From the IMG/VR virus record IMGVR_UViG_3300017593_000278, positions 1 to 9,371 of that record: a stretch of DNA of 9,371 bases; one strand, given 5' to 3'. The notes under the pieces were generated by a model. That model did not search any database. It was not told the DNA's origin and saw only the letters and a list, made by a program, of their open reading frames with translations. The position numbers were made by a program, and so were the translations under genes. This document shows positions 1-9,371 of this stretch, piece after piece; the stretch's first letter is position 1; every line of letters starts with the position of its first letter.

Positions 1-572
1 GCAGTTGCTTTATCTTTCTTCTCACTTGCTTTCTTAACAGCAATAAACACTTTTACGCCAAACAATTCAAACAAACTTTCAATTGTCTTTCTTCTCTCTA
101 TATATATATTTGATAAACCACCCTCGAACTTCTTATCAAAAGTCTCATAATTATTCTGTATATATTTTATTATTCCACCTTCAGTATCGACCCACAACGT
201 CTTATATCCAAGAGTCCCCCAAAACCATGCCTCTTGTAGCATAAATCTTGTTTTGCCTATTTCTGGTGGTGCGTAAAAACCAAATAGTTCATCTGAATTA
301 TACGGAAATCCATAGAAAGCTTTATTCATAACTTCCAAACTGCTAGGTAATTCCAAAAAATTTTCAATCCCATCTAATATTCTTTCAGCCTTCAACATAT
401 CCCTCACCTCTAATAATCTAACATGTTTACAATGTCCATGGGTTAAAAACCCAATGCAAGAACAAAAAGGTTCACCATTCCAAATAACAGCCGTATGGAT
501 ACCAGTGCTACCTTCAACTAATATCATCCTCATGTTCAGCCGTTTCATCCATATATGTTCCAATAACTTCAT
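1..572 (-). CDS. SWIM zinc-finger + RecA/RadB/KaiC-superfamily P-loop ATPase (C-terminus outside window; absent from ORF track)
   Basis: Manual translation gives an open frame from ATG 572 (GGTGA at 578-582, 5 nt spacer) to the window edge: MKLLEHIWMKRLNMRMILVEGSTGIHTAVIWNGEPFCSCIGFLTHGHCKHVRLLEVRDMLKAERILDGIENFLELPSSLEVMNKAFYGFPYNSDELFGFYAPPEIGKTRFMLQEAWFWGTLGYKTLWVDTEGG... It contains CxC-x8-CxH (SWIM-like), Walker A APPEIGKT, and the RecA-family hhhDTEG motif carrying the catalytic Glu. Confidence 0.85.
   Translation of the reverse strand, partial: MKLLEHIWMKRLNMRMILVEGSTGIHTAVIWNGEPFCSCIGFLTHGHCKHVRLLEVRDMLKAERILDGIENFLELPSSLEVMNKAFYGFPYNSDELFGFYAPPEIGKTRFMLQEAWFWGTLGYKTLWVDTEGGIIKYIQNNYETFDKKFEGGLSNIYIERRKTIESLFELFGVKVFIAVKKASEKKDKAT
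404..410 (-). promoter_or_regulatory. Internal Shine-Dalgarno GAGGTGA ahead of in-frame ATG 398
   Basis: Minus strand reads GAGGTGA-GGGAT-ATG. The heptamer and 5-nt spacer match those at six other gene starts in the window. Confidence 0.6.
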
Positions 573-933
573 ACGACTCACCATCCAATACCACATATTT
601 ACCAAGCTTCTTTTCGTACACTAAAAAATCATAGACAACCTCTGGGTATTTTGCAAGTGCTTTCACTGTTGCTATAGCATGCAATATGCCACCAACCAAC
701 ACAATATATATTTTGTCCTTATCATATTTAAAGCTTTCGGTATACCATGCATCGATGTTCTTCTTTATGCTCGTTATTGCTTTATTGACTAACGCTTTAT
801 TAGAGTAATCATAAATCACAGTATTTGTTAATTCCTTGACAATAACAATATCATTGACACCATCAAATGTACGTACAACCTCATCTGATATATTATATTT
901 CACCACAGAAGGTACAAATACCCATATAACCAC
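514..933 (-). CDS. Hypothetical ~139 aa alpha/beta (Rossmann-like) protein; possible CARF/Csx3/SAVED-like fold
   Basis: Start moved from 981 to GTG 933 because GAGGTGA (939-945) sits 5 nt upstream. The segment KIYIVLVGG-helix-FLVYEKKLGKYVVL resembles the strand-Gly-helix-hairpin core of Csx3/SAVED-type domains. The fold call is inference only. Confidence 0.7.
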   Translation of the reverse strand: MVIWVFVPSVVKYNISDEVVRTFDGVNDIVIVKELTNTVIYDYSNKALVNKAITSIKKNIDAWYTESFKYDKDKIYIVLVGGILHAIATVKALAKYPEVVYDFLVYEKKLGKYVVLDGESYEVIGTYMDETAEHEDDIS

Positions 934-1621: not shown

Positions 1622-1903
1622 CTAAAACTTCTTAATCACCAATACTTTATAACTCACTACAATATCCTGAGCTGAATCACTATTATTAATAGCCTTAACA
1701 TAAATAGTATGCAAATCTTCGGCAATTCGCACAAATTCAACAGACGCATCTGAAGTATCGGTTTTAATTCCAACAACAATTGCTACACTGTTACTACCAA
1801 TATCAAAACTCACAACACTTGAAGACCCAGCACCAACTGAACTTGCCGTAACTGTCCCCTCGACATAGTCAGCCCGAATAATATCTGGAAATTCCCTCAA
1901 CAT
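1622..1903 (-). CDS. Small beta-rich virion protein (candidate capsid decoration/cement), 93 aa
   Basis: GGGGTGA (1908-1914) precedes ATG 1903. The sequence is V/S/A/I-rich with alternating beta-strand patterns and directly follows the MCP. Function is inferred from position. Confidence 0.6.
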   Translation of the reverse strand: MLREFPDIIRADYVEGTVTASSVGAGSSSVVSFDIGSNSVAIVVGIKTDTSDASVEFVRIAEDLHTIYVKAINNSDSAQDIVVSYKVLVIKKF

Positions 1904-1932
1904 TTTATCACCCCAAATATTATTAAAAGGCA

Positions 1933-3123
1933 TCAAGCCTTAACAATATCTCTAATCTTTGCCTGAACTCTTAGGTTTCTTGCTACTACTTCTCCAAAGA
2001 ATGTGTAGATACCTCTTGTGGTTGTCTTGTTGTTAACAAGTGGGTTATCAATCTCATAGTATCTAGGTGGTTCTGCAACAGATATAGCAAGTCTTGGATA
2101 TCCATTTCCTTCAGGGTCTGATGTATCAAGTATATATAGCCTGTTTAGACCATTGCTAGAACTTCTATCAACAGGTGTATCTACTGCAGTTATGATAGGT
2201 ATTCCGAATATAGACATCACTTTCATTCCAACGTCAACACCCTCAGGTGTCTGTACACCGTTAACACTACCTCTTGCATATCTCATCTCAGTCTTTGCAT
2301 ATCTTGTAAGTGTCTCGTACATGCTAAGTAGGTATGCATATGTCTTTGCACCAGTAAGCATAACATTTGGTCTTCCCCCTCTTTCCCAAACTTCAGCAAG
2401 AGCATCAAGTATTAAATCTGTAGTAAGTGCCTGTCCACCTGATTCGGATGAATATTTAACAACTGAATCGTATATACTATCTGCACTTCTATCAACTCCG
2501 TAAACATCTTCTCTACCTGCAACCTGTAGTGCTGATGCCTCTGCAGAGCTTGAAACTATTCTGTCTAGTGGAAGTATGTAGTTTGTGGTTGTTGATGGGT
2601 CTTCACAATCTGAACCATCTGTAAAGTTCTCACCGAAATATTTTCTCATTATCATCATGTTTATTAGCTTTACAAAATTCTGGGCATACTCTTTCCTAAG
2701 TCTGTCAACTGTAACGACTGCATCATCTTTACTCCTACTCTTTAATAGCATTTTCTTACTAATTTCAAACGGAAGTGCCGCCTTTTTAATATCTGCTTCC
2801 ATTCTAGCATACTCTGGAAGTACTGCAGATGGAAGAGTATCACCTTCGCCAAACACAATGTTCGCATACGTAGTTGGTAAAGCTACTTCAACTCTCCAAC
2901 CACTTCTTGGAAAATCTGTTTTTGGTAACATACCAAAAGCATTTGCTTCTTTATTGAGTAAAGACCACACTAGCATACCATAAGTCTTGTTTAGATAATC
3001 AGCACCAAGTGTAGTTTGTATTGCACCTGTACCCTTTGTTATTCCTTCAACATCCCAAAATACACCACTCTCTCCTTCAAGATACCACTTTTTTAGCTCA
3101 GCTAAACTCAATATTCTATACAT
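1933..3123 (-). CDS. Major capsid protein (HK97 fold), ~396 aa
   Basis: Size and position follow protease and scaffold. The N-terminal YGMLVWSLLNKEANAFGMLPKTDFPRSGWRV resembles, from memory, MCPs of archaeal tailed viruses (halovirus/magrovirus type). It also has FGIPII and a C-terminal GEVVARNLRVQAKIRDI. GAGGTGA (3129-3135) supports ATG 3123. Confidence 0.88.
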   Translation of the reverse strand: MYRILSLAELKKWYLEGESGVFWDVEGITKGTGAIQTTLGADYLNKTYGMLVWSLLNKEANAFGMLPKTDFPRSGWRVEVALPTTYANIVFGEGDTLPSAVLPEYARMEADIKKAALPFEISKKMLLKSRSKDDAVVTVDRLRKEYAQNFVKLINMMIMRKYFGENFTDGSDCEDPSTTTNYILPLDRIVSSSAEASALQVAGREDVYGVDRSADSIYDSVVKYSSESGGQALTTDLILDALAEVWERGGRPNVMLTGAKTYAYLLSMYETLTRYAKTEMRYARGSVNGVQTPEGVDVGMKVMSIFGIPIITAVDTPVDRSSSNGLNRLYILDTSDPEGNGYPRLAISVAEPPRYYEIDNPLVNNKTTTRGIYTFFGEVVARNLRVQAKIRDIVKA

Positions 3124-3128
3124 TTCTT

Positions 3129-3626
3129 TCACCTCTTAAGTAATTCAAACACCTTATCAGGATTTCCTCTACCGTCCAAAATCTCAAAAATCTCATCGTC
3201 TATACCTTTTTCGATATCAATCGCATCAACAACTGGAGTCTCTGAAACATCATCAAATTCCTCTTTTTCTTCAGTTTCGCCCTTTTTAACTTCTTCATCT
3301 TTGGCTTCCTCTTTAACTTCCTCTTCAGCTTTCTTTTCGACTTCCGCTTTCTCAATTGTTTCCTCTGCTTCCTTATCAGTTACCTCTTCGGTAACTTCAT
3401 TGGTATTGTCTTCAGCTTTCTCAACTTTATCTTCCTCAACTTTCTCCTCAATCTTTTCTTCAACATCTGTTTTAATCCCTTTCTTAATCTCGTCGAAATT
3501 ATCAATCATAACAGATATTAATCCTTTCTGAACTTCGACCAACTTATCTATAACATCCTCTATATCTTGTAGTTTTTTCTCAATTTCCTTTAATTTTTCC
3601 TCAACAATCTCAAAATTTTCACCCAT
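3129..3626 (-). CDS. Acidic coiled-coil capsid scaffolding protein, ~165 aa
   Basis: Extremely E/K/D-rich with an N-terminal heptad pattern (VEEKLKEIEKKLQDIEDVIDKL). It sits immediately upstream of the MCP. GAGGTG (3634-3639) supports ATG 3626. Confidence 0.7.
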   Translation of the reverse strand: MGENFEIVEEKLKEIEKKLQDIEDVIDKLVEVQKGLISVMIDNFDEIKKGIKTDVEEKIEEKVEEDKVEKAEDNTNEVTEEVTDKEAEETIEKAEVEKKAEEEVKEEAKDEEVKKGETEEKEEFDDVSETPVVDAIDIEKGIDDEIFEILDGRGNPDKVFELLKR

Positions 3627-3637
3627 TCCCAAACACC

Positions 3638-3874
3638 TCAATTCTTTTTCTTATCCCGTTCATTCAACCAAACTTGTTTTCTTCGTCTTGCTCCAACTGT
3701 TCTGGGGTCATCAGGCTCAGATTCAGATGGACGTTTCGTTTTCATTTGATGATAAAATATCCACCCACATAATCTCCGAGCCGTATCTTCATCAACACCA
3801 TTCTCATTCATCACACGTTCAACACAATGGTAAAACCATTTCTTTGGTGGTCTCAAATCATTTGCTTTCATCAC
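3638..3874 (-). CDS. Small basic protein with a CV-x17-C helical module (head-associated, unknown function)
   Basis: The ORF fills the gap between protease and scaffold. WFYHCVERVMNENGVDEDTARRLCGWI resembles the protease C-terminal segment. The start could be GTG 3874 or ATG 3871. Confidence 0.7.
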   Translation of the reverse strand: MMKANDLRPPKKWFYHCVERVMNENGVDEDTARRLCGWIFYHQMKTKRPSESEPDDPRTVGARRRKQVWLNERDKKKN

Positions 3875-5120
3875 CCTCTCTACGAAATTTACCTTTTACC
3901 ATTTCCTTTGCTTTTTCAATTTCGTCAACAAAAATTTCTAGCTCAGTTAGAGATAATTCAATATCATCACCGAACATATCGACAACAAAATGATATTCAT
4001 CTCCTTTCTTAACATACCTCTTTATATATGCACATATACGTTTAGCACTTTCCAAACTCTTACCAGTTGCCATCATGTATCTAACACAACCACAAAATCT
4101 TGACTTGGTATCAGGGTCATCTGGACATGACATTTCTTTAAAATGGCTACCTTCCATATACTTCTCTTTATCCACTTTAGCTTTGATAAGATTTACAAGC
4201 TCTTCTACCTTTTCTTTCAATCCAATAGTATCAACACGTTTCTCGCCAACCGCTTCGTATACACTATCAACAGCATCTGGAGAATTGTTTATTTCAATAG
4301 TTGTATCAATTCCCTCATCATCCTTTTTAATATCTTCCATTTTATTTTCTTCTCCCAACGATACCACCACCAACAAAGATTTCATAACATCTAACAATAC
4401 ATCTACTTTAACATCATTTGACGCACCACTATGTAATATGTTATGCACTACACCTTTATAAATATCCACTATTCTCGATACTTCTTCATCTTCACTCACC
4501 GCATTTAGACGAGTATTGAAAATTTCAAGCATATCACCAAAATCAAGACTCTTTAAAATACTTTCATAATCTAGTTCAATTTGTCCTTTAGCCAAAGAAA
4601 CTTCTTCTATTTTAGCATAAGGATTTCTAGGACTACCAACAATGCTAATTTCACTAATTTCAATTTGCTCAAATTCTCTAATAACAACATCATCTTTTAA
4701 AACATCCTTTGATTTTCCTTTCCCACCAATCGAAAATGCTGTAAGTTTGCCCTCTTTAATTGCATTCCAAACCGCATTATCTGTAGCATAATCATCGAAT
4801 ATTTGTGCAACAATATATACACCCCATTTACTTGTATCTGGATGTTTCATTATTTCCCACTGCACAATTTTACCAACCTTAACAATAGAATGTGCAAAAT
4901 GAACATCCCCACCACGCTTCATGTATTTAATCATTGCAGACTTCAATACACTAATTGGTAAAATATCATTATCTTTATCAACAACTTCAACACTAGCCCA
5001 ACCACTAACAAGTCTATCCGATTCATTAGTAACAGTTATTTTCATAGATTCTGTAACATATTTATTCGCATCAATGACATCACCATTATCAATTTCTTGT
5101 TTAATAATATCTTCACTCAT
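3858..5120 (-). CDS. Prohead maturation serine protease (HK97 gp4/XkdF-like) with a long C-terminal extension
   Basis: RLVSGWASVEVVDKDNDI, a candidate catalytic His (FAHS..VGKI), VWNAIKEGKLTAFSIGG (catalytic Ser motif) and ISEISIVGSPRNPYA. GAGGTGA (5126-5132) supports ATG 5120. Confidence 0.9.
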   Translation of the reverse strand: MSEDIIKQEIDNGDVIDANKYVTESMKITVTNESDRLVSGWASVEVVDKDNDILPISVLKSAMIKYMKRGGDVHFAHSIVKVGKIVQWEIMKHPDTSKWGVYIVAQIFDDYATDNAVWNAIKEGKLTAFSIGGKGKSKDVLKDDVVIREFEQIEISEISIVGSPRNPYAKIEEVSLAKGQIELDYESILKSLDFGDMLEIFNTRLNAVSEDEEVSRIVDIYKGVVHNILHSGASNDVKVDVLLDVMKSLLVVVSLGEENKMEDIKKDDEGIDTTIEINNSPDAVDSVYEAVGEKRVDTIGLKEKVEELVNLIKAKVDKEKYMEGSHFKEMSCPDDPDTKSRFCGCVRYMMATGKSLESAKRICAYIKRYVKKGDEYHFVVDMFGDDIELSLTELEIFVDEIEKAKEMVKGKFRREGDESK

Positions 5121-5125
5121 AATAT

Positions 5126-5716
5126 TCACCTCTTTCTAACACCTCTAACAACACATCTACACCGTGGATGAACCGTATATTCCCTACTTTTACCCCCACC
5201 GATACTAGCTATGTACTCCCGTAACATTTCAATTTCAACACCACCCTTTGTAAGCTCTGCAACTCTCCTACATTTCTCACATACTTTATCATCTTTTTTA
5301 TTAACAAACTCAAATTTGTTAATACCCAATCTCTCTTGATAATACATAACTCTAACACTATTTGCTAAATTACTTAATTCAGTCATCGCTATTGTCTCTG
5401 CCTTATCTCTATCCAATCCAATATTTACCAATTCTTCAATAACTTTACCTTTCCTAACAAACCATCCATTGACGAATGAATGTACCAAAACTTCATTAAC
5501 TTTTTTAGCTACCTCTTCATCTAAATCGGTATAAAACTTCCACCTATCAACTTTAAATAATGCCCATTCTCGCATTCCTTTTGTAACTTTTGTAATATAA
5601 TATGTTCTACCTTTTTCCAATATATCCAAATCATCATCATCTAATACAGTAGTAAACCACGAATATCCACCAATTAATGACTTCCGCACAAAATTTCTTA
5701 TGTTATCAATAATCAC
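5126..5716 (-). CDS. Mu gpF / SPP1 gp7-like minor head morphogenesis protein
   Basis: AETIAMTELSN, DDKVCEKC and C-terminal HPRCRC are hallmark motifs. It lies between portal and protease. The GTG start overlaps the portal TGA, with GGAGGT upstream. Confidence 0.88.
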   Translation of the reverse strand: MIIDNIRNFVRKSLIGGYSWFTTVLDDDDLDILEKGRTYYITKVTKGMREWALFKVDRWKFYTDLDEEVAKKVNEVLVHSFVNGWFVRKGKVIEELVNIGLDRDKAETIAMTELSNLANSVRVMYYQERLGINKFEFVNKKDDKVCEKCRRVAELTKGGVEIEMLREYIASIGGGKSREYTVHPRCRCVVRGVRKR

Positions 5717-7371
5717 GCCCCTTCAACCTCCTTATCTGACGCATCTCTACGCTTTCTCCTAACTATCTGTGGTTGTCCTTGATATCTGTCAGCTGTACCA
5801 CTTGACATTCTACCTCTTTCGGGTTCTCCTTGAAATCTATCCTCTGGTTTATTCATATTAATCTTATTATCTTCTTGTTTTGTTGTCTTTTCTTCAGATT
5901 TAACAAATTTGAAATCTATACCGTCTTCACCCTCAAACATTATAGCATCATAACCAAGTGTTTTCATTGCCTGAGCTTTCTGTATTCTTAACATCTCCCT
6001 CTCAATCTTTGCCTTCATATCTTTCTCTTCATGGTGAACCAACTTAATCTCCCAATCTTCAATCTCCAACTGTTTAGCAATCCATTTCAATATTCCTTCG
6101 TTCAATCTATATTGCTCCCTATCCAATACCCTATTTGTAACAGTTATCTGAAGTCCCTCATTAGCCAAACCAACCCCAGTTGAATAATCAGCTTGGAATA
6201 ATGGCATTACACCAAAGGTAGCACCAATACTTCTTCTTAATTCATTTCTATATTCAATGAAATTGATATCATCAGCCCTATAACTCATATCTATAAATTC
6301 CGCTGGTCTCGTGCTTTTCATCAAATTAGGATTATCAATCGCAAACGGTATTAAGCTATATGGGTTCTTTGCTCTCTCCTCTTCAATACGTTTCCACATC
6401 TTGTAAACTTTAGCTGGATTTCCTCGTATTATCAGTAAACCAGCTGGTGGTCTTCTCAAAGAGTAACTATATAATACATATTCATCCATTTTCATCAAAA
6501 TCATAACCTTTTGCCACACAGACATTAACAACGGTGTACCATATCCCACACTATGCTCACTCTTTGTATCAAAATATACTTCATCCCCAGAATAATATAC
6601 TATAATATTACTATTAAGCTTCGCTCTGAAATGAGCCTCAAACATCTCAGTGCCACAAATTGGACATTTAATATTCCCTTTCTCATAATCATCTGGTTTA
6701 ACAGTTATAAGTTTATTCCTGTGTTTTGGACAAACCATCAAATAATTCCCATTATCATCTCTACCATAAGAACCAAATCTATTCATAATTATTTGCATCA
6801 CAAACGGTGAACCCCTAATAATCTCTTTGATTTCACTTTTTACAACTTTACCATTTTTAAAATAATATTTCTTATGAGCAACAACAAAAGCATTATCATA
6901 AACATTTAAATCGACTGCAAACCCATATAACAAATCGAGTAACTTCTGTTTGTTTTCATTTATATTACCCATCCACTCCATTAATTTATTATACTCATTT
7001 TCATCAGGTTCTACTATATTTGTAGAACCACATTTCTCACATTTATCAACACGCTCTTCATATACAGCTCCACAATCCTCACACTTACTAGCAAATTTAG
7101 GTTTTAAATATATACCATTTTTAATTGTCTCATCAACAATACTCCTAATTATTGTTTTAACAACATCACTATTATTAAATAAATATCTCGCTATTTTTAA
7201 TGTTGTCAAATTTGGCTCTCTAAACGACTGGTCATATGGAATAATCTTTTTAAAATCATCCAATACTGGTCTAGGATTCATTCCACCATATATCGCAAAA
7301 TACTCATCATCACTTGATACATTATCCCCTTTTGTGAACAGTTTATCTTTAATATATTCAATAATACCCAT
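5713..7371 (-). CDS. Portal protein with two zinc-ribbon insertions, ~552 aa
   Basis: Portal-like segments DLNVYDNAFV, GYGTPLLMS and FIEYRNELRRSIGATFGVMP. It is the first gene of the portal-gpF-protease-MCP order. Inserts are CEDC..CEKC and CPKH..CPIC. GAGGTGA (7377-7383) supports ATG 7371. Confidence 0.88.
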   Translation of the reverse strand: MGIIEYIKDKLFTKGDNVSSDDEYFAIYGGMNPRPVLDDFKKIIPYDQSFREPNLTTLKIARYLFNNSDVVKTIIRSIVDETIKNGIYLKPKFASKCEDCGAVYEERVDKCEKCGSTNIVEPDENEYNKLMEWMGNINENKQKLLDLLYGFAVDLNVYDNAFVVAHKKYYFKNGKVVKSEIKEIIRGSPFVMQIIMNRFGSYGRDDNGNYLMVCPKHRNKLITVKPDDYEKGNIKCPICGTEMFEAHFRAKLNSNIIVYYSGDEVYFDTKSEHSVGYGTPLLMSVWQKVMILMKMDEYVLYSYSLRRPPAGLLIIRGNPAKVYKMWKRIEEERAKNPYSLIPFAIDNPNLMKSTRPAEFIDMSYRADDINFIEYRNELRRSIGATFGVMPLFQADYSTGVGLANEGLQITVTNRVLDREQYRLNEGILKWIAKQLEIEDWEIKLVHHEEKDMKAKIEREMLRIQKAQAMKTLGYDAIMFEGEDGIDFKFVKSEEKTTKQEDNKINMNKPEDRFQGEPERGRMSSGTADRYQGQPQIVRRKRRDASDKEVEGA

Positions 7372-7376
7372 CAATA

Positions 7377-7706
7377 TCACCTCGTTTTATCATACCTATC
7401 AAATATTTTTTCATACTTATCCCGAATCCTAAAATACTCTTTCATAAATTCCTCATCATGACTTTTCCAATTTTCATACCCACGTTCTCTAAGATTGTAA
7501 TGAGCCATTTCATGCATGATAATTTCAAATAATCCCCATCTAGCTAATGCCGTTTGTCCACCCTTAATATATAAAATATTATGCCCCTTAACAGTACGGG
7601 GCATGAAACCTGCTCTAGGATATTTAACTCTATCATTACTATGAACAATTTCTATTTTCCATCCCAACTGTTTTAATATTTTCCTGATTTCACTAATAAT
7701 ATTCAT
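7377..7706 (-). CDS. Small zincin metalloprotease (SprT/WLM/YgjP-like), 109 aa
   Basis: IIMHEMAH (HExxH) is followed by SHDEEF, which supplies the third His ligand as in SprT/YgjP-like minigluzincins. Confidence 0.8.
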   Translation of the reverse strand: MNIISEIRKILKQLGWKIEIVHSNDRVKYPRAGFMPRTVKGHNILYIKGGQTALARWGLFEIIMHEMAHYNLRERGYENWKSHDEEFMKEYFRIRDKYEKIFDRYDKTR

Positions 7707-7707
7707 T

Positions 7708-8490
7708 TTAACCTACCTCAATATCATGTGCCCACAACATCTTATTACTACGAGATACACCAAACATCCAAAACTTTGTTTGAGATTTTAAGCCCATTTT
7801 CGCAACATAATCATCATCAGACACCATTGTACCATTAATAAGAATCGTAATATTATTCCAATCCAAACGACTAAACGTATGGAAATGCCCCAATAAAACA
7901 ACATCGAACTGCTCATCTATGCCACCACTATACCAACGCATTGCTTTCTGAATAATACCGTAGAGAGGTATGTTTTGATACATATAAACTTGGTCGCCAT
8001 GAATTAATAAATACTTCCAACCTCTTATACTTGCTATATGATACCAATCTCCAACATGTACATCAACTTGATTATTGTGCCTATATATATCTCTTAACCT
8101 TTTATACAACATAAGTTCCCAATTCGTAATACCCTTTCTATTCGCTCTACCATGATTCCCATAAACACAATGAATATCAACTTTCCTATACCTGTCCAAC
8201 AGACCTTCAGTAAACCAATCAAAAGTATCAACGAAAACATCAATTGCCTCATCTACATTCAAATCAGTATTGTACCCTTGCCCACCATATATAGCTTCAC
8301 CATCTATCATATCACCAAGTAAGAATATGTGAATATCAGGCATTTTATAAGCCTTATTAATTTCATTCTTAAAATCTAAAACACTCCTCAATAATTTACC
8401 CATACGCTGTCTAAACACATCCACATTATATGATTTAGTTTTCTTACCAACATGCGTATCACTAATAACAACAACGGTACTTATCTCCAT
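7708..8490 (-). CDS. Calcineurin-like metallophosphoesterase, ~260 aa
   Basis: All five motifs are present: SDTH, GDMIDG, GNHG, HGD, GHFH. Start moved to ATG 8490, which overlaps the upstream TAA (TAATG) and has GGTGG upstream. Confidence 0.9.
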   Translation of the reverse strand: MEISTVVVISDTHVGKKTKSYNVDVFRQRMGKLLRSVLDFKNEINKAYKMPDIHIFLLGDMIDGEAIYGGQGYNTDLNVDEAIDVFVDTFDWFTEGLLDRYRKVDIHCVYGNHGRANRKGITNWELMLYKRLRDIYRHNNQVDVHVGDWYHIASIRGWKYLLIHGDQVYMYQNIPLYGIIQKAMRWYSGGIDEQFDVVLLGHFHTFSRLDWNNITILINGTMVSDDDYVAKMGLKSQTKFWMFGVSRSNKMLWAHDIEVG

Positions 8491-8879
8491 TATCCACCAC
8501 CAACCATATATACAAAATAATAGACGATTAAAATAATCGTCAACACTATACTCCAATATCTCAATATTTTATCCTGAAGTTTATCGCTATATGACTGCTC
8601 ACGCTCAATATTATCTAGTTTATTTTTCAATAACATTATATCATTATTGTGCTCCAGTTTTGTTACAAATCGTTCCGAATAATTATTATATTTCACAAAC
8701 TTGCGTTCAACCACTTTATCCAAATCATGTTGTTCATCGACCATTTCTTTTACAAGTGTTGATAATTCTTTAATATCTTCTCTTATATTACCAATAGCTT
8801 CCTTGATTTCTCCCCGAAATCGTTCAAAATCACGTTCAAGTTTCAGCACACGTTCATCAATATCAGGCATGTTCATCAT
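8490..8879 (-). CDS. Coiled-coil protein with a single C-terminal transmembrane helix (holin/XhlA-like architecture)
   Basis: Heptad-rich charged N-terminus (IDERVLKLERDFERF...) and a hydrophobic tail WSIVLTIILIVYYFVYMV. Function is inferred. Confidence 0.65.
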   Translation of the reverse strand: MMNMPDIDERVLKLERDFERFRGEIKEAIGNIREDIKELSTLVKEMVDEQHDLDKVVERKFVKYNNYSERFVTKLEHNNDIMLLKNKLDNIEREQSYSDKLQDKILRYWSIVLTIILIVYYFVYMVGGG

Positions 8880-8915: not shown

Positions 8916-9371
8916 CTAACCCCAAATCACATAAATCGGTTCATACTTCCATTTTCCTATTCTACCATGTTTATATGTTGAAAATTTACCTGTTTGAGGC
9001 TCATACATATATACCTCTGGAGTCCCATCATTCTTTCTTGCGATAAATATATTCCATGCATGGTATCCAATATGACCAACATCGTCAACAATCCGCCCAA
9101 CTGCAATTCCGACATTATTTATACCGTATACAAATGGAACAAATCCAGCAAAACTAACTGCAAAATTATCGCAATCATATTCTTCCAGTCTATATTTACT
9201 CCATTTCACCATGTCATACTTGATTATTTTCATCATCGTCTCAAATTTCGGATATTTATACGAACCATCCCAAAGATATGTAATACACAAAGATTCACAT
9301 GCCTTCAGCATTTTCAATAAATCATCTGCTTTAATTACATATTTCTCCCTAACCTTTGTCCTTAAGAAAAC
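8916..9371 (-). CDS. Papain/transglutaminase-like cysteine protease (MOA agglutinin C-terminal-like); N-terminus outside window
   Basis: YDCDNFA (Cys), GYHAWNIF (His) and YEPQTG (Glu) form a candidate catalytic triad. The frame stays open past 9317 to the window edge (VFLRTKVREKYVIKADDLLKM...). Confidence 0.8.
   Translation of the reverse strand, partial: VFLRTKVREKYVIKADDLLKMLKACESLCITYLWDGSYKYPKFETMMKIIKYDMVKWSKYRLEEYDCDNFAVSFAGFVPFVYGINNVGIAVGRIVDDVGHIGYHAWNIFIARKNDGTPEVYMYEPQTGKFSTYKHGRIGKWKYEPIYVIWG

Follow-up and report, generated by a model that had tools for sequence, protein, structure and literature searches.

In the present study, we describe a small protein of 139 amino acids (aa) encoded at positions 514-933, on the minus strand, of the window, that is, the complete 9,371-nucleotide (nt) IMG/VR record IMGVR_UViG_3300017593_000278, a linear fragment classed in the record as approximately 15% complete. 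The structural model indicates that this protein (hereafter, the target) very probably adopts a CARF/SAVED-type fold with a minimal core of approximately 120 residues, and the co-folding of two copies suggests that it is likely to be a symmetric homodimer, held together by helix 3 and the terminal hairpin. On the strength of structural prediction and gene context, we tentatively propose, with somewhat less than even confidence, that the target binds cyclic oligonucleotides as a minimal viral CARF-like protein, functioning as a sponge or a slow ring nuclease.

The target is a real gene, because 18 true relatives were recovered and the same genomic position is held in 10 independent loci. The reading frame extends from a GTG at 933-931 to a stop at 516-514, and a GAGGTGA ribosome-binding site, read from the sequence, is located at 945-939 on the minus strand, 5 nt upstream of the GTG. 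A longer frame beginning at TTG-981 was ruled out, because the homologues begin at the GTG-933 position (their first residues, MVVW.FVPS, coincide with the GTG-933 product) and because this start is preceded by the ribosome-binding site. The gap between the stop of the head-tail adaptor gene and the start of the target is just 10 nt, and these two genes are therefore probably co-transcribed. The probable start of the following ATPase gene, an ATG at 548, overlaps the final 35 nt of the target, and the same arrangement was observed in a related 27-kb contig (L001). A first-pass annotation of this DNA had placed an open reading frame (ORF) at 514-933 without naming a strand, and had described its product as a stand-alone alpha/beta protein located between head and recombination genes. 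The ORF is present at exactly those positions, and both peptide strings quoted for it, KIYIVLVGGILHAIATVKAL and FLVYEKKLGKYVVL, were found in the 139-aa translation; no fusions occur among the relatives, the model has the alpha/beta pattern described below, and the gene is indeed flanked by the adaptor (944-1594) on one side and a SWIM/RecA-like ATPase (3-548) on the other.

The family is very rare, comprising about 25 metagenomic proteins of 110-153 aa, all of which are stand-alone. A word-indexed search of 5.8 billion proteins revealed only three sequences (100, 83 and 53% identity), or 11 with a profile, and an exhaustive phmmer search of 1.84 billion cluster representatives revealed 19 matches, including the 18 true relatives (E 1.9e-35 to 5e-4); a later profile search added 4 further members. 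The nineteenth phmmer match, P0022 (806 aa), is a laminin-G repeat protein and was dropped as a false positive. Residue conservation was counted in a 23-sequence family alignment. Six residues are invariant (Y43, Y76, G81, L93, L104 and E107), and Y113 and Y106 are retained in 22 and 20 of the 23 sequences, respectively, and P8 in 18. Position 9 is Ser in 9, Cys in 9, Asn in 3 and another residue in 2 sequences; position 42 is Asn (16) or Asp (7), position 82 is Gly (14) or Ser (9), and positions 108, 109 and 112 are Lys or Arg. The His of the GGILH motif (position 85), which the annotation had put forward for mutation, is not invariant, as His is found in 12, Gln in 7 and Asn in 2 sequences, such that one of these three is present in 21/23. 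The beta4-beta5 hairpin is the best-conserved motif and the signature of the family. The conserved Tyr, Gly-loop and Lys/Arg positions would suit nucleotide binding.

The AlphaFold2 model of the window protein has a mean predicted local distance difference test (pLDDT) score of 87.3 and a predicted template modelling (pTM) score of 0.81. Strands are observed at residues 3-7, 30-34, 74-78, 101-107, 112-117 and 123-125 and helices at 15-22, 46-67 and 83-94, in the order strand-helix-strand-long helix-strand plus Gly loop-helix-beta-hairpin, and the C-terminal tail after residue 126 (to 139) is disordered in the model. The result is a Rossmann-like alpha/beta sheet in which a reverse turn replaces the last crossover, generating an antiparallel terminal hairpin, as is characteristic of the CARF/SAVED superfamily. 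A Foldseek comparison, one of the checks suggested in the annotation, placed SAVED and CARF proteins at the top of the PDB rows (3TM-SAVED, Can2, Cdn1, Cap4 and Cap5), with every E-value above 1e-3. To determine whether this likeness is family-wide, a relative 24% identical to the target (P0019) was folded separately (pLDDT 90.2), and the top 16 rows of an exhaustive PDB fold search with this second model were all CARF or SAVED proteins. In the ESM Atlas, viral clusters of approximately 110 aa ranked first in the shape search, followed by the CARF protein RtcR and SAVED clusters. Thus, of the CARF/Csx3/SAVED likeness that had been claimed by eye, the CARF/SAVED part is supported by the structure matches; no Csx3 chain appears in any of four PDB fold lists, and the Csx3 reading was rejected on fold.

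A dimer model had also been suggested as a check. When two copies were co-folded, a dimer was predicted with an ipSAE interface score of 0.72 (runs 0.72, 0.75 and 0.69) versus 0.00 for the best control; the ipSAE mark is reached by 20/30 proteins solved as same-chain pairs and by 1/23 solved as single chains. The runs showed at least 95% contact agreement, with a partner pLDDT of at least 80. In the predicted symmetric interface, helix 3 pairs with itself (83:83, 86:86, 87:87 and 90:90), each copy has its hairpin and strand 6 against the other copy, and the two Gly loops (81-82) come into contact at the two-fold axis (closest pairs 83:83, 83:81 and 83:82). Two-fold pairing of units with the loops of both at the centre is the arrangement of the CARF/SAVED proteins, and it is reproduced here in silico. 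The S/C9 position follows strand 1, [ND]42-Y43 follows strand 2, and E107-[KR]108-[KR]109 and [KR]112 are located on the hairpin; from the strand order, we infer that all of these lie on the same sheet edge as the Gly loops, at the C-terminal ends of the parallel strands. S/C9, H/Q85, K108 and K112 are not named among the interface residues, which leaves their position uncertain rather than showing them to be free.

With the gene, family, fold and dimer predicted in silico, we infer the ligand, the pocket and the anti-defence role as follows. The target would be a stand-alone minimal member of the CARF/SAVED superfamily in an uncultured archaeal head-tail virus. In the symmetric homodimer, the invariant Gly loop of each copy (G81-G/S82, with H/Q85 after it) would adjoin its counterpart at the two-fold axis, and the dimer would bind a second messenger of the host; for an archaeal host, the likeliest candidate is the cyclic tetra- or hexa-adenylate of type III CRISPR. 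This binding is proposed because the predicted arrangement of loops and polar residues is that of CARF dimers holding a symmetric cyclic oligonucleotide. The messenger would be removed through sequestration (sponge) or slow cleavage (ring nuclease), like the actions of Csx15 and AcrIII-2, and this removal would blunt the signalling defence of the host. A sponge is more likely than an efficient nuclease, because no invariant catalytic residue was seen.

Stand-alone versions of the CARF/SAVED fold, including viral ones, are known that act as sponges or ring nucleases (PMC13148439, PMC12751052). Csx15 is a minimal CARF-superfamily sponge for cyclic tetra-adenylate (cA4) and a slow ring nuclease, with S9, H11, H82, R116, R120 and R123 as conserved residues (PMC13148439). 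Compared without direct superposition, these residues have no evident counterparts in the target, save the Ser/Cys after strand 1, and the conserved motifs of the target family are different ones, namely [ND]-Y, G-[GS]-x-x-[HQ] and Y-E-[KR]-[KR]. No sequence likeness between Csx15 and the target was detected in NCBIfam, Pfam or PADLOC, and no Csx15 structure is present in the fold lists; moreover, Csx15 is cellular (CRISPR-linked or orphan), whereas the target is viral. AcrIII-2 (Crn5; PDB 9r8s) is a viral SAVED ring nuclease of 238 aa, in which a full SAVED domain is built of two fused CARF-like units, and is 53% identical to the CalpL of the host (PMC12751052). In contrast, the target comprises one unit only and would have to homodimerise, it has no detectable cellular parent, and its one partly conserved His, at position 85, is in a different loop from the catalytic His128 of AcrIII-2. 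The Crn1-type ring nucleases (Sso1393 and Sis0811) and the CARF sensors (Csm6, Can2, Card1, Cad1 and Csa3) share 4-15% identity with the target, which is without one of their beta-alpha units, their winged helix-turn-helix or effector domains and the basic motif II residue, and matches no CARF hidden Markov model (HMM). AcrIII-1 (DUF1874), widespread in archaeal viruses, and Csx3/Crn3 remove cA4, as proposed for the target, but their folds are unrelated to that of the target, and neither appeared in any structure or profile search of the target. Among the known phage sponges, Acb4 was rejected as kin on account of its dsRBD-like fold (PMC11722364), and no link was drawn to Sequestin, Lockin and Acb5, as the paper describing them (10.1101/2025.07.12.664507) makes no mention of CARF, SAVED or Rossmann. 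The viral proteins reported to disarm cyclic-oligoadenylate signalling are few, namely AcrIII-1 and AcrIII-2, and in the HMM-based search of phage genomes for CARF/SAVED proteins conducted in the White laboratory, the AcrIII-2 gene was the promising candidate (PMC12751052). The target therefore fits best into a known fold class, as a new minimal variant that is viral and a sequence orphan.

The gene context of the relatives was also considered. In L001, a Metallophos nuclease, an HExxH protein, portal, protease, scaffold, capsid and adaptor genes are followed by the target and the AAA_25 ATPase, and further by genes for the primase large subunit (PriL), a family B polymerase (PolB) with an intein, a Cas4-like nuclease and an ERCC4 nuclease. 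This gene content points to an archaeal virus, and the best BFVD match of the model, a protein of an 'uncultured archaeal virus' (E 2e-13), agrees. The arrangement target-ATPase-PriL-PolB was also observed in L004, L008 and L009. To avoid circularity, IMG/VR was searched with the ATPase alone, and all three loci recovered (ATPase 31-36% identical; contigs of 16-90 kb) have a target homologue upstream. The conserved order is capsid, adaptor, 0-2 inserted genes, target, at most one small gene and ATPase. Given the ATPase-only loci and this conserved order, the target gene is core in the lineage and keeps with the ATPase rather than with the adaptor. Two scans of a species genome collection, one with a target trio and one with the ATPase alignment, found no provirus, and so no host was assigned.

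Several small features of these loci were noted in addition. A small gene (approximately 82-90 aa) lies between the target and the ATPase in L009 (6792-7064), L019 (3656-3922) and L020 (3723-3971), which carry more distant relatives; the L019 and L020 copies are alike by eye and both contain YGGV. The ATPase (window 3-548; L001 10380-11477; L021 3953-6010) combines an N-terminal SWIM-type zinc finger, the C.C...C.H pattern of which is invariant in four homologues, with a RecA/DnaB-like AAA_25/AAA_24 core, and the L021 protein has 685 aa, indicating an extra fused domain. The intein in the L001 PolB gene (12556-15849) carries a LAGLIDADG endonuclease, and the precomputed Pfam matches of the L008 polymerase (674 aa) show no intein families.

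The family nearest to the target, both in shape (top row of the ESM Atlas, TM-score 0.58/0.70; rows 2-5 of BFVD) and in language-model features, is PF23992 (Pam3_gp32-like), comprising uncharacterised phage proteins of approximately 110 aa in 114 cultured-phage records. Sub-threshold PF23992 matches were obtained for 4/19 members of the target family (best E 1.3e-4, 22.3 bits; curated cut-off 27 bits); no member reached the 27-bit cut-off, and the window protein itself showed no PF23992 match. The phage family phrog_5888 was matched by P0019 only (E 2.5e-4). Using hhalign, the 23 archaeal-virus sequences were aligned to 9 PF23992 proteins with a probability of 57.7% (P 1e-4), over a span covering strand 3, the Gly loop, helix 3 and the hairpin. 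On the basis of the sub-threshold matches, the profile-profile score and the shape match, the target family is probably distantly related to PF23992/phrog_5888, as opposed to an established member. Both families are viral and both are located in replication modules. Their motifs differ, with VVQE, FGE and G-[ND]-P in PF23992 and P-[SC], [ND]-Y and G-[GS] in the target family, as do their neighbours, because the PF23992 gene is found after a superfamily 2 (SF2) helicase and before Gam, whereas the target precedes a RecA-like ATPase. A full-text literature search for PF23992 found no paper, and none was found that describes the archaeal-virus family.

The records of PF23992/phrog_5888 include Yuavirus, Bordetella, Acinetobacter, Burkholderia and Pelagibacter phages. 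In 8 genomes from several phage groups (Pam3, YuA, Lydia, Acinetobacter SH-Ab 15497, BcepF1, Brevundimonas Fanboy, Klebsiella K21lambda1 and Salmonella PMBT28), the PF23992 gene directly follows an SF2/SNF2 helicase gene; the linear record of Pelagibacter phage HTVC027P opens with this gene and therefore shows no upstream neighbour. A Gam-like or approximately 180-aa gene is next after the PF23992 gene, Fanboy excepted. Counting the downstream cassette genes where the fetched phage region reaches them, a gp34-like gene and a RecD/UvrD-like helicase gene were observed further downstream in YuA, Lydia, Pam3 and the Acinetobacter, Klebsiella and Salmonella phages, and PolA in the last three. In Pseudomonas phage Lydia (L018), the PF23992 gene (3501-3854) is labelled 'CRISPR-associated-like protein' in the record. 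The Lydia helicase gene preceding it bears the record label 'P1-like antirestriction protein'. Judging from gene content, the PF23992 gene is dispensable for the phage cassette, since Pbunavirus DL60 (L022) has the same helicase/Gam-like/gp34-like cassette without a gp32-like ORF, and the Gam-like and gp34-like genes are found in 450-495 phage records. The PF23992 link broadens the distribution and adds no mechanism. We consider it unlikely, on the whole, that the archaeal-virus family and PF23992/phrog_5888 together constitute one unrecognised superfamily of minimal viral CARF-fold dimers that sequester or cleave the cyclic-oligonucleotide signals of the host.

Several results weigh against an anti-defence role, or against a simple CARF label for the target. 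No match for the window protein was obtained in Pfam, NCBIfam or PADLOC, including the CARF, SAVED, Cas ancillary and defence models, and the PDB sequence-profile search gave only noise, at E 0.2 or worse, with no CARF/SAVED chain. The motif I position (the loop following strand 1, where a polar Ser, Thr or His is conserved) corresponds to position 9 and is mostly Ser or Cys, and no Ser, His or Lys, of the kind that a ring nuclease would be expected to conserve, is invariant there; E107 is invariant. Motif II was reportedly defined by Makarova et al. in 2014 as a conserved basic residue or [DN]x[ST]xxx[RK] after the central strand and Gly-rich loop. In the family alignment no conserved basic residue follows strand 3, the conserved basic residues being on the hairpin (108, 109 and 112) instead. 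His85 is partly variable, and Csx3 is missing from the fold lists. The core status of the gene and its translational linkage to the replication ATPase also weigh against an anti-defence role. Among the remaining sequence searches, one stray Cas-type match was found among the 19 family members (Cas_APE2256, E 0.017), tblastn of the target against cultured phages found no match, and two weak PHROG matches of the target (phrog_28409, E 0.007; a baseplate-spike family, E 0.024) were treated as noise.

The linkage to the ATPase raises the question of a replication or recombination accessory, in which the dimer would work with the SWIM/RecA-like (DnaB/RadA-type) ATPase and PriL-PolB, e.g. as a loader or regulator, or by binding nucleotides or DNA ends, the CARF-like fold having been co-opted for a non-defence ligand or protein contact. 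We consider this role the main rival, and possible, albeit less likely than not. The gene is core in the lineage, the target precedes the genes for the AAA_25 ATPase, PriL and PolB wherever a locus is long enough to show it (L001, L002, L004, L008, L009 and L019-L021), its end overlaps the ATPase gene in most loci, insertions are commoner and larger between adaptor and target than between target and ATPase, and in 8 phages PF23992 follows its helicase within a helicase/Gam/gp34/RecD-like/PolA cassette. However, the neighbouring NTPases belong to unrelated classes (RecA-like in the archaeal viruses and SF2 in the phages), such that no conserved partner is evident; the Pbunavirus cassette works without a PF23992 gene; the PF23992 link is itself probable rather than established; and, because the genome of the whole lineage is collinear, the adjacency to the ATPase may mean shared descent only. 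Nearly all structural neighbours of the target are ligand sensors of defence systems, and we know of no helicase cofactor with a CARF-like fold.

If the target is a ligand binder, the ligand might also be another small nucleotide or an RNA end, sensed or buffered for the regulation of the virus itself and not for counter-defence; examples would be 2',3'-cyclic-phosphate ends (as for RtcR), 5'-phosphate nucleotides (as for the Argonaute MID domain) or an unrelated metabolite. This appears quite improbable, as RtcR- and MID-type neighbours score below the SAVED/CARF sensors of cyclic oligonucleotides, and it is not obvious how a stand-alone sensor lacking an output domain would signal, other than by sequestration. 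The position of the gene immediately after the adaptor (10-nt gap) in the window, L001, L002, L004 and L006 would fit a virion neck protein of the head-closure or stopper type, which follows the head-tail adaptor in many tailed viruses, and both the size of the target and the weak baseplate-spike match would be in keeping with such a role. Nevertheless, a neck protein is highly improbable and was rejected on fold: the model is Rossmann-like alpha/beta, no connector, stopper or tail-completion structure is present in any fold list, and no connector PHROG or Pfam match was obtained. Moreover, other genes part the target from the adaptor in L008, L009, L019 and L021, while the target stays with the ATPase, and it is followed by replication genes, not tail genes. 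The remaining weight falls on something else. The binding of cyclic oligonucleotides by a minimal CARF-like dimer is the reading preferred here.

The features of the window are listed in Table 1; all credible genes are carried by the minus strand.

Table 1. Features of the 9,371-nt window, read 5' to 3' on the minus strand from the 9,371 end
Feature	Position	Strand	Basis or remark
Lectin C-terminal-like domain protein	8916-9317	-	PF18022 match
Coiled-coil protein	8490-8879	-	Family scans
Mre11/SbcD-like Metallophos exonuclease	7708-8556	-	phrog_284, E 2e-42
109-aa HExxH protein	7377-7706	-	ORF reading
Portal	5713-7380	-	phrog_18178, E 7e-40
Mu F-like protein	5126-5716	-	Family scans
S78 prohead protease	3858-5129	-	Family scans
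Very acidic, scaffold-like protein	3129-3641	-	ORF reading
Major capsid protein	1933-3132	-	phrog_24667, E 3e-30
104-aa protein	1622-1936	-	ORF reading
Head-tail adaptor, 216 aa	944-1594	-	phrog_442, E 2.1e-5; phrog_17057, E 3.8e-9; upstream of target in related loci too
Target, 139 aa	514-933	-	ORF, translation, homologues, predicted fold
D42-Y43 of target ([ND]-Y, Y43 invariant), loop after strand 2	805..810	-	Conservation; part of predicted dimer interface and of C-terminal edge of sheet
Strand 3 end and Gly loop of target, residues 78-82 (VLVGG)	688..702	-	G81 invariant, G/S82; N-terminus of helix 3
beta4-beta5 hairpin of target (YDFLVYEKKLGKYV), residues 101-114	592..633	-	FLVYEKK/KYVVL; L104 and E107 invariant, basic 108/109/112, Y113
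SWIM zinc-finger + RecA/DnaB-like ATPase, 5' part of gene, cut by window end	3-548	-	AAA_25/AAA_24 matches

The head genes, from portal to adaptor, are bordered by nuclease genes at one end and by replication genes at the opposite end, and no terminase or tail genes were identifiable in the window or in 20 kb of L001 (1-20414). In both the window and L001, all genes lie on the same strand, separated by very short gaps or overlapping, and GC skew values are strongly negative along the whole length (-0.13 to -0.61). The match of the first ORF to PF18022, the C-terminal domain of ricin-type lectins and agglutinins, passes the cut-off (E 8e-8). The 109-aa protein, whose HExxH motif is HEMAH, may be a small metalloprotease; its gene is directly upstream of the portal gene and overlaps it, and the protein is kept in L001 (E 2.5e-32), with one weak NCBIfam match (E 0.08). 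The portal has two zinc-ribbon-like insertions, at residues ~97-122 and 215-245, based on weak Pfam matches to zf-ChsH2, TFIIB and Zn_ribbon_3, and these are unusual among portals. The end of the prohead protease gene is overlapped by a 78-aa ORF (3638-3874, minus strand), at the start of which a Cys-containing helical motif from near the protease C-terminus (residues 333-369) is found again (BLASTP pair E 0.003); duplication of a module or a product related to frameshifting might account for this repeat.

If the target binds such host signals, it would represent a new counter-defence family, it would show that the viral versions of the sensor fold include ancient, diverged copies and not just recent captures, and it would provide a function for a domain of unknown function in more than 100 cultured phages, where the idea is directly testable. 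Should the wider superfamily with PF23992/phrog_5888 be real, it would constitute a new anti-type III CRISPR and anti-CBASS family common to archaeal and bacterial viruses that has been missed by HMM-based CARF/SAVED screens. If the target instead plays a role in replication, the CARF fold would have been put to an unusual use apart from defence; the finding would be informative either way.

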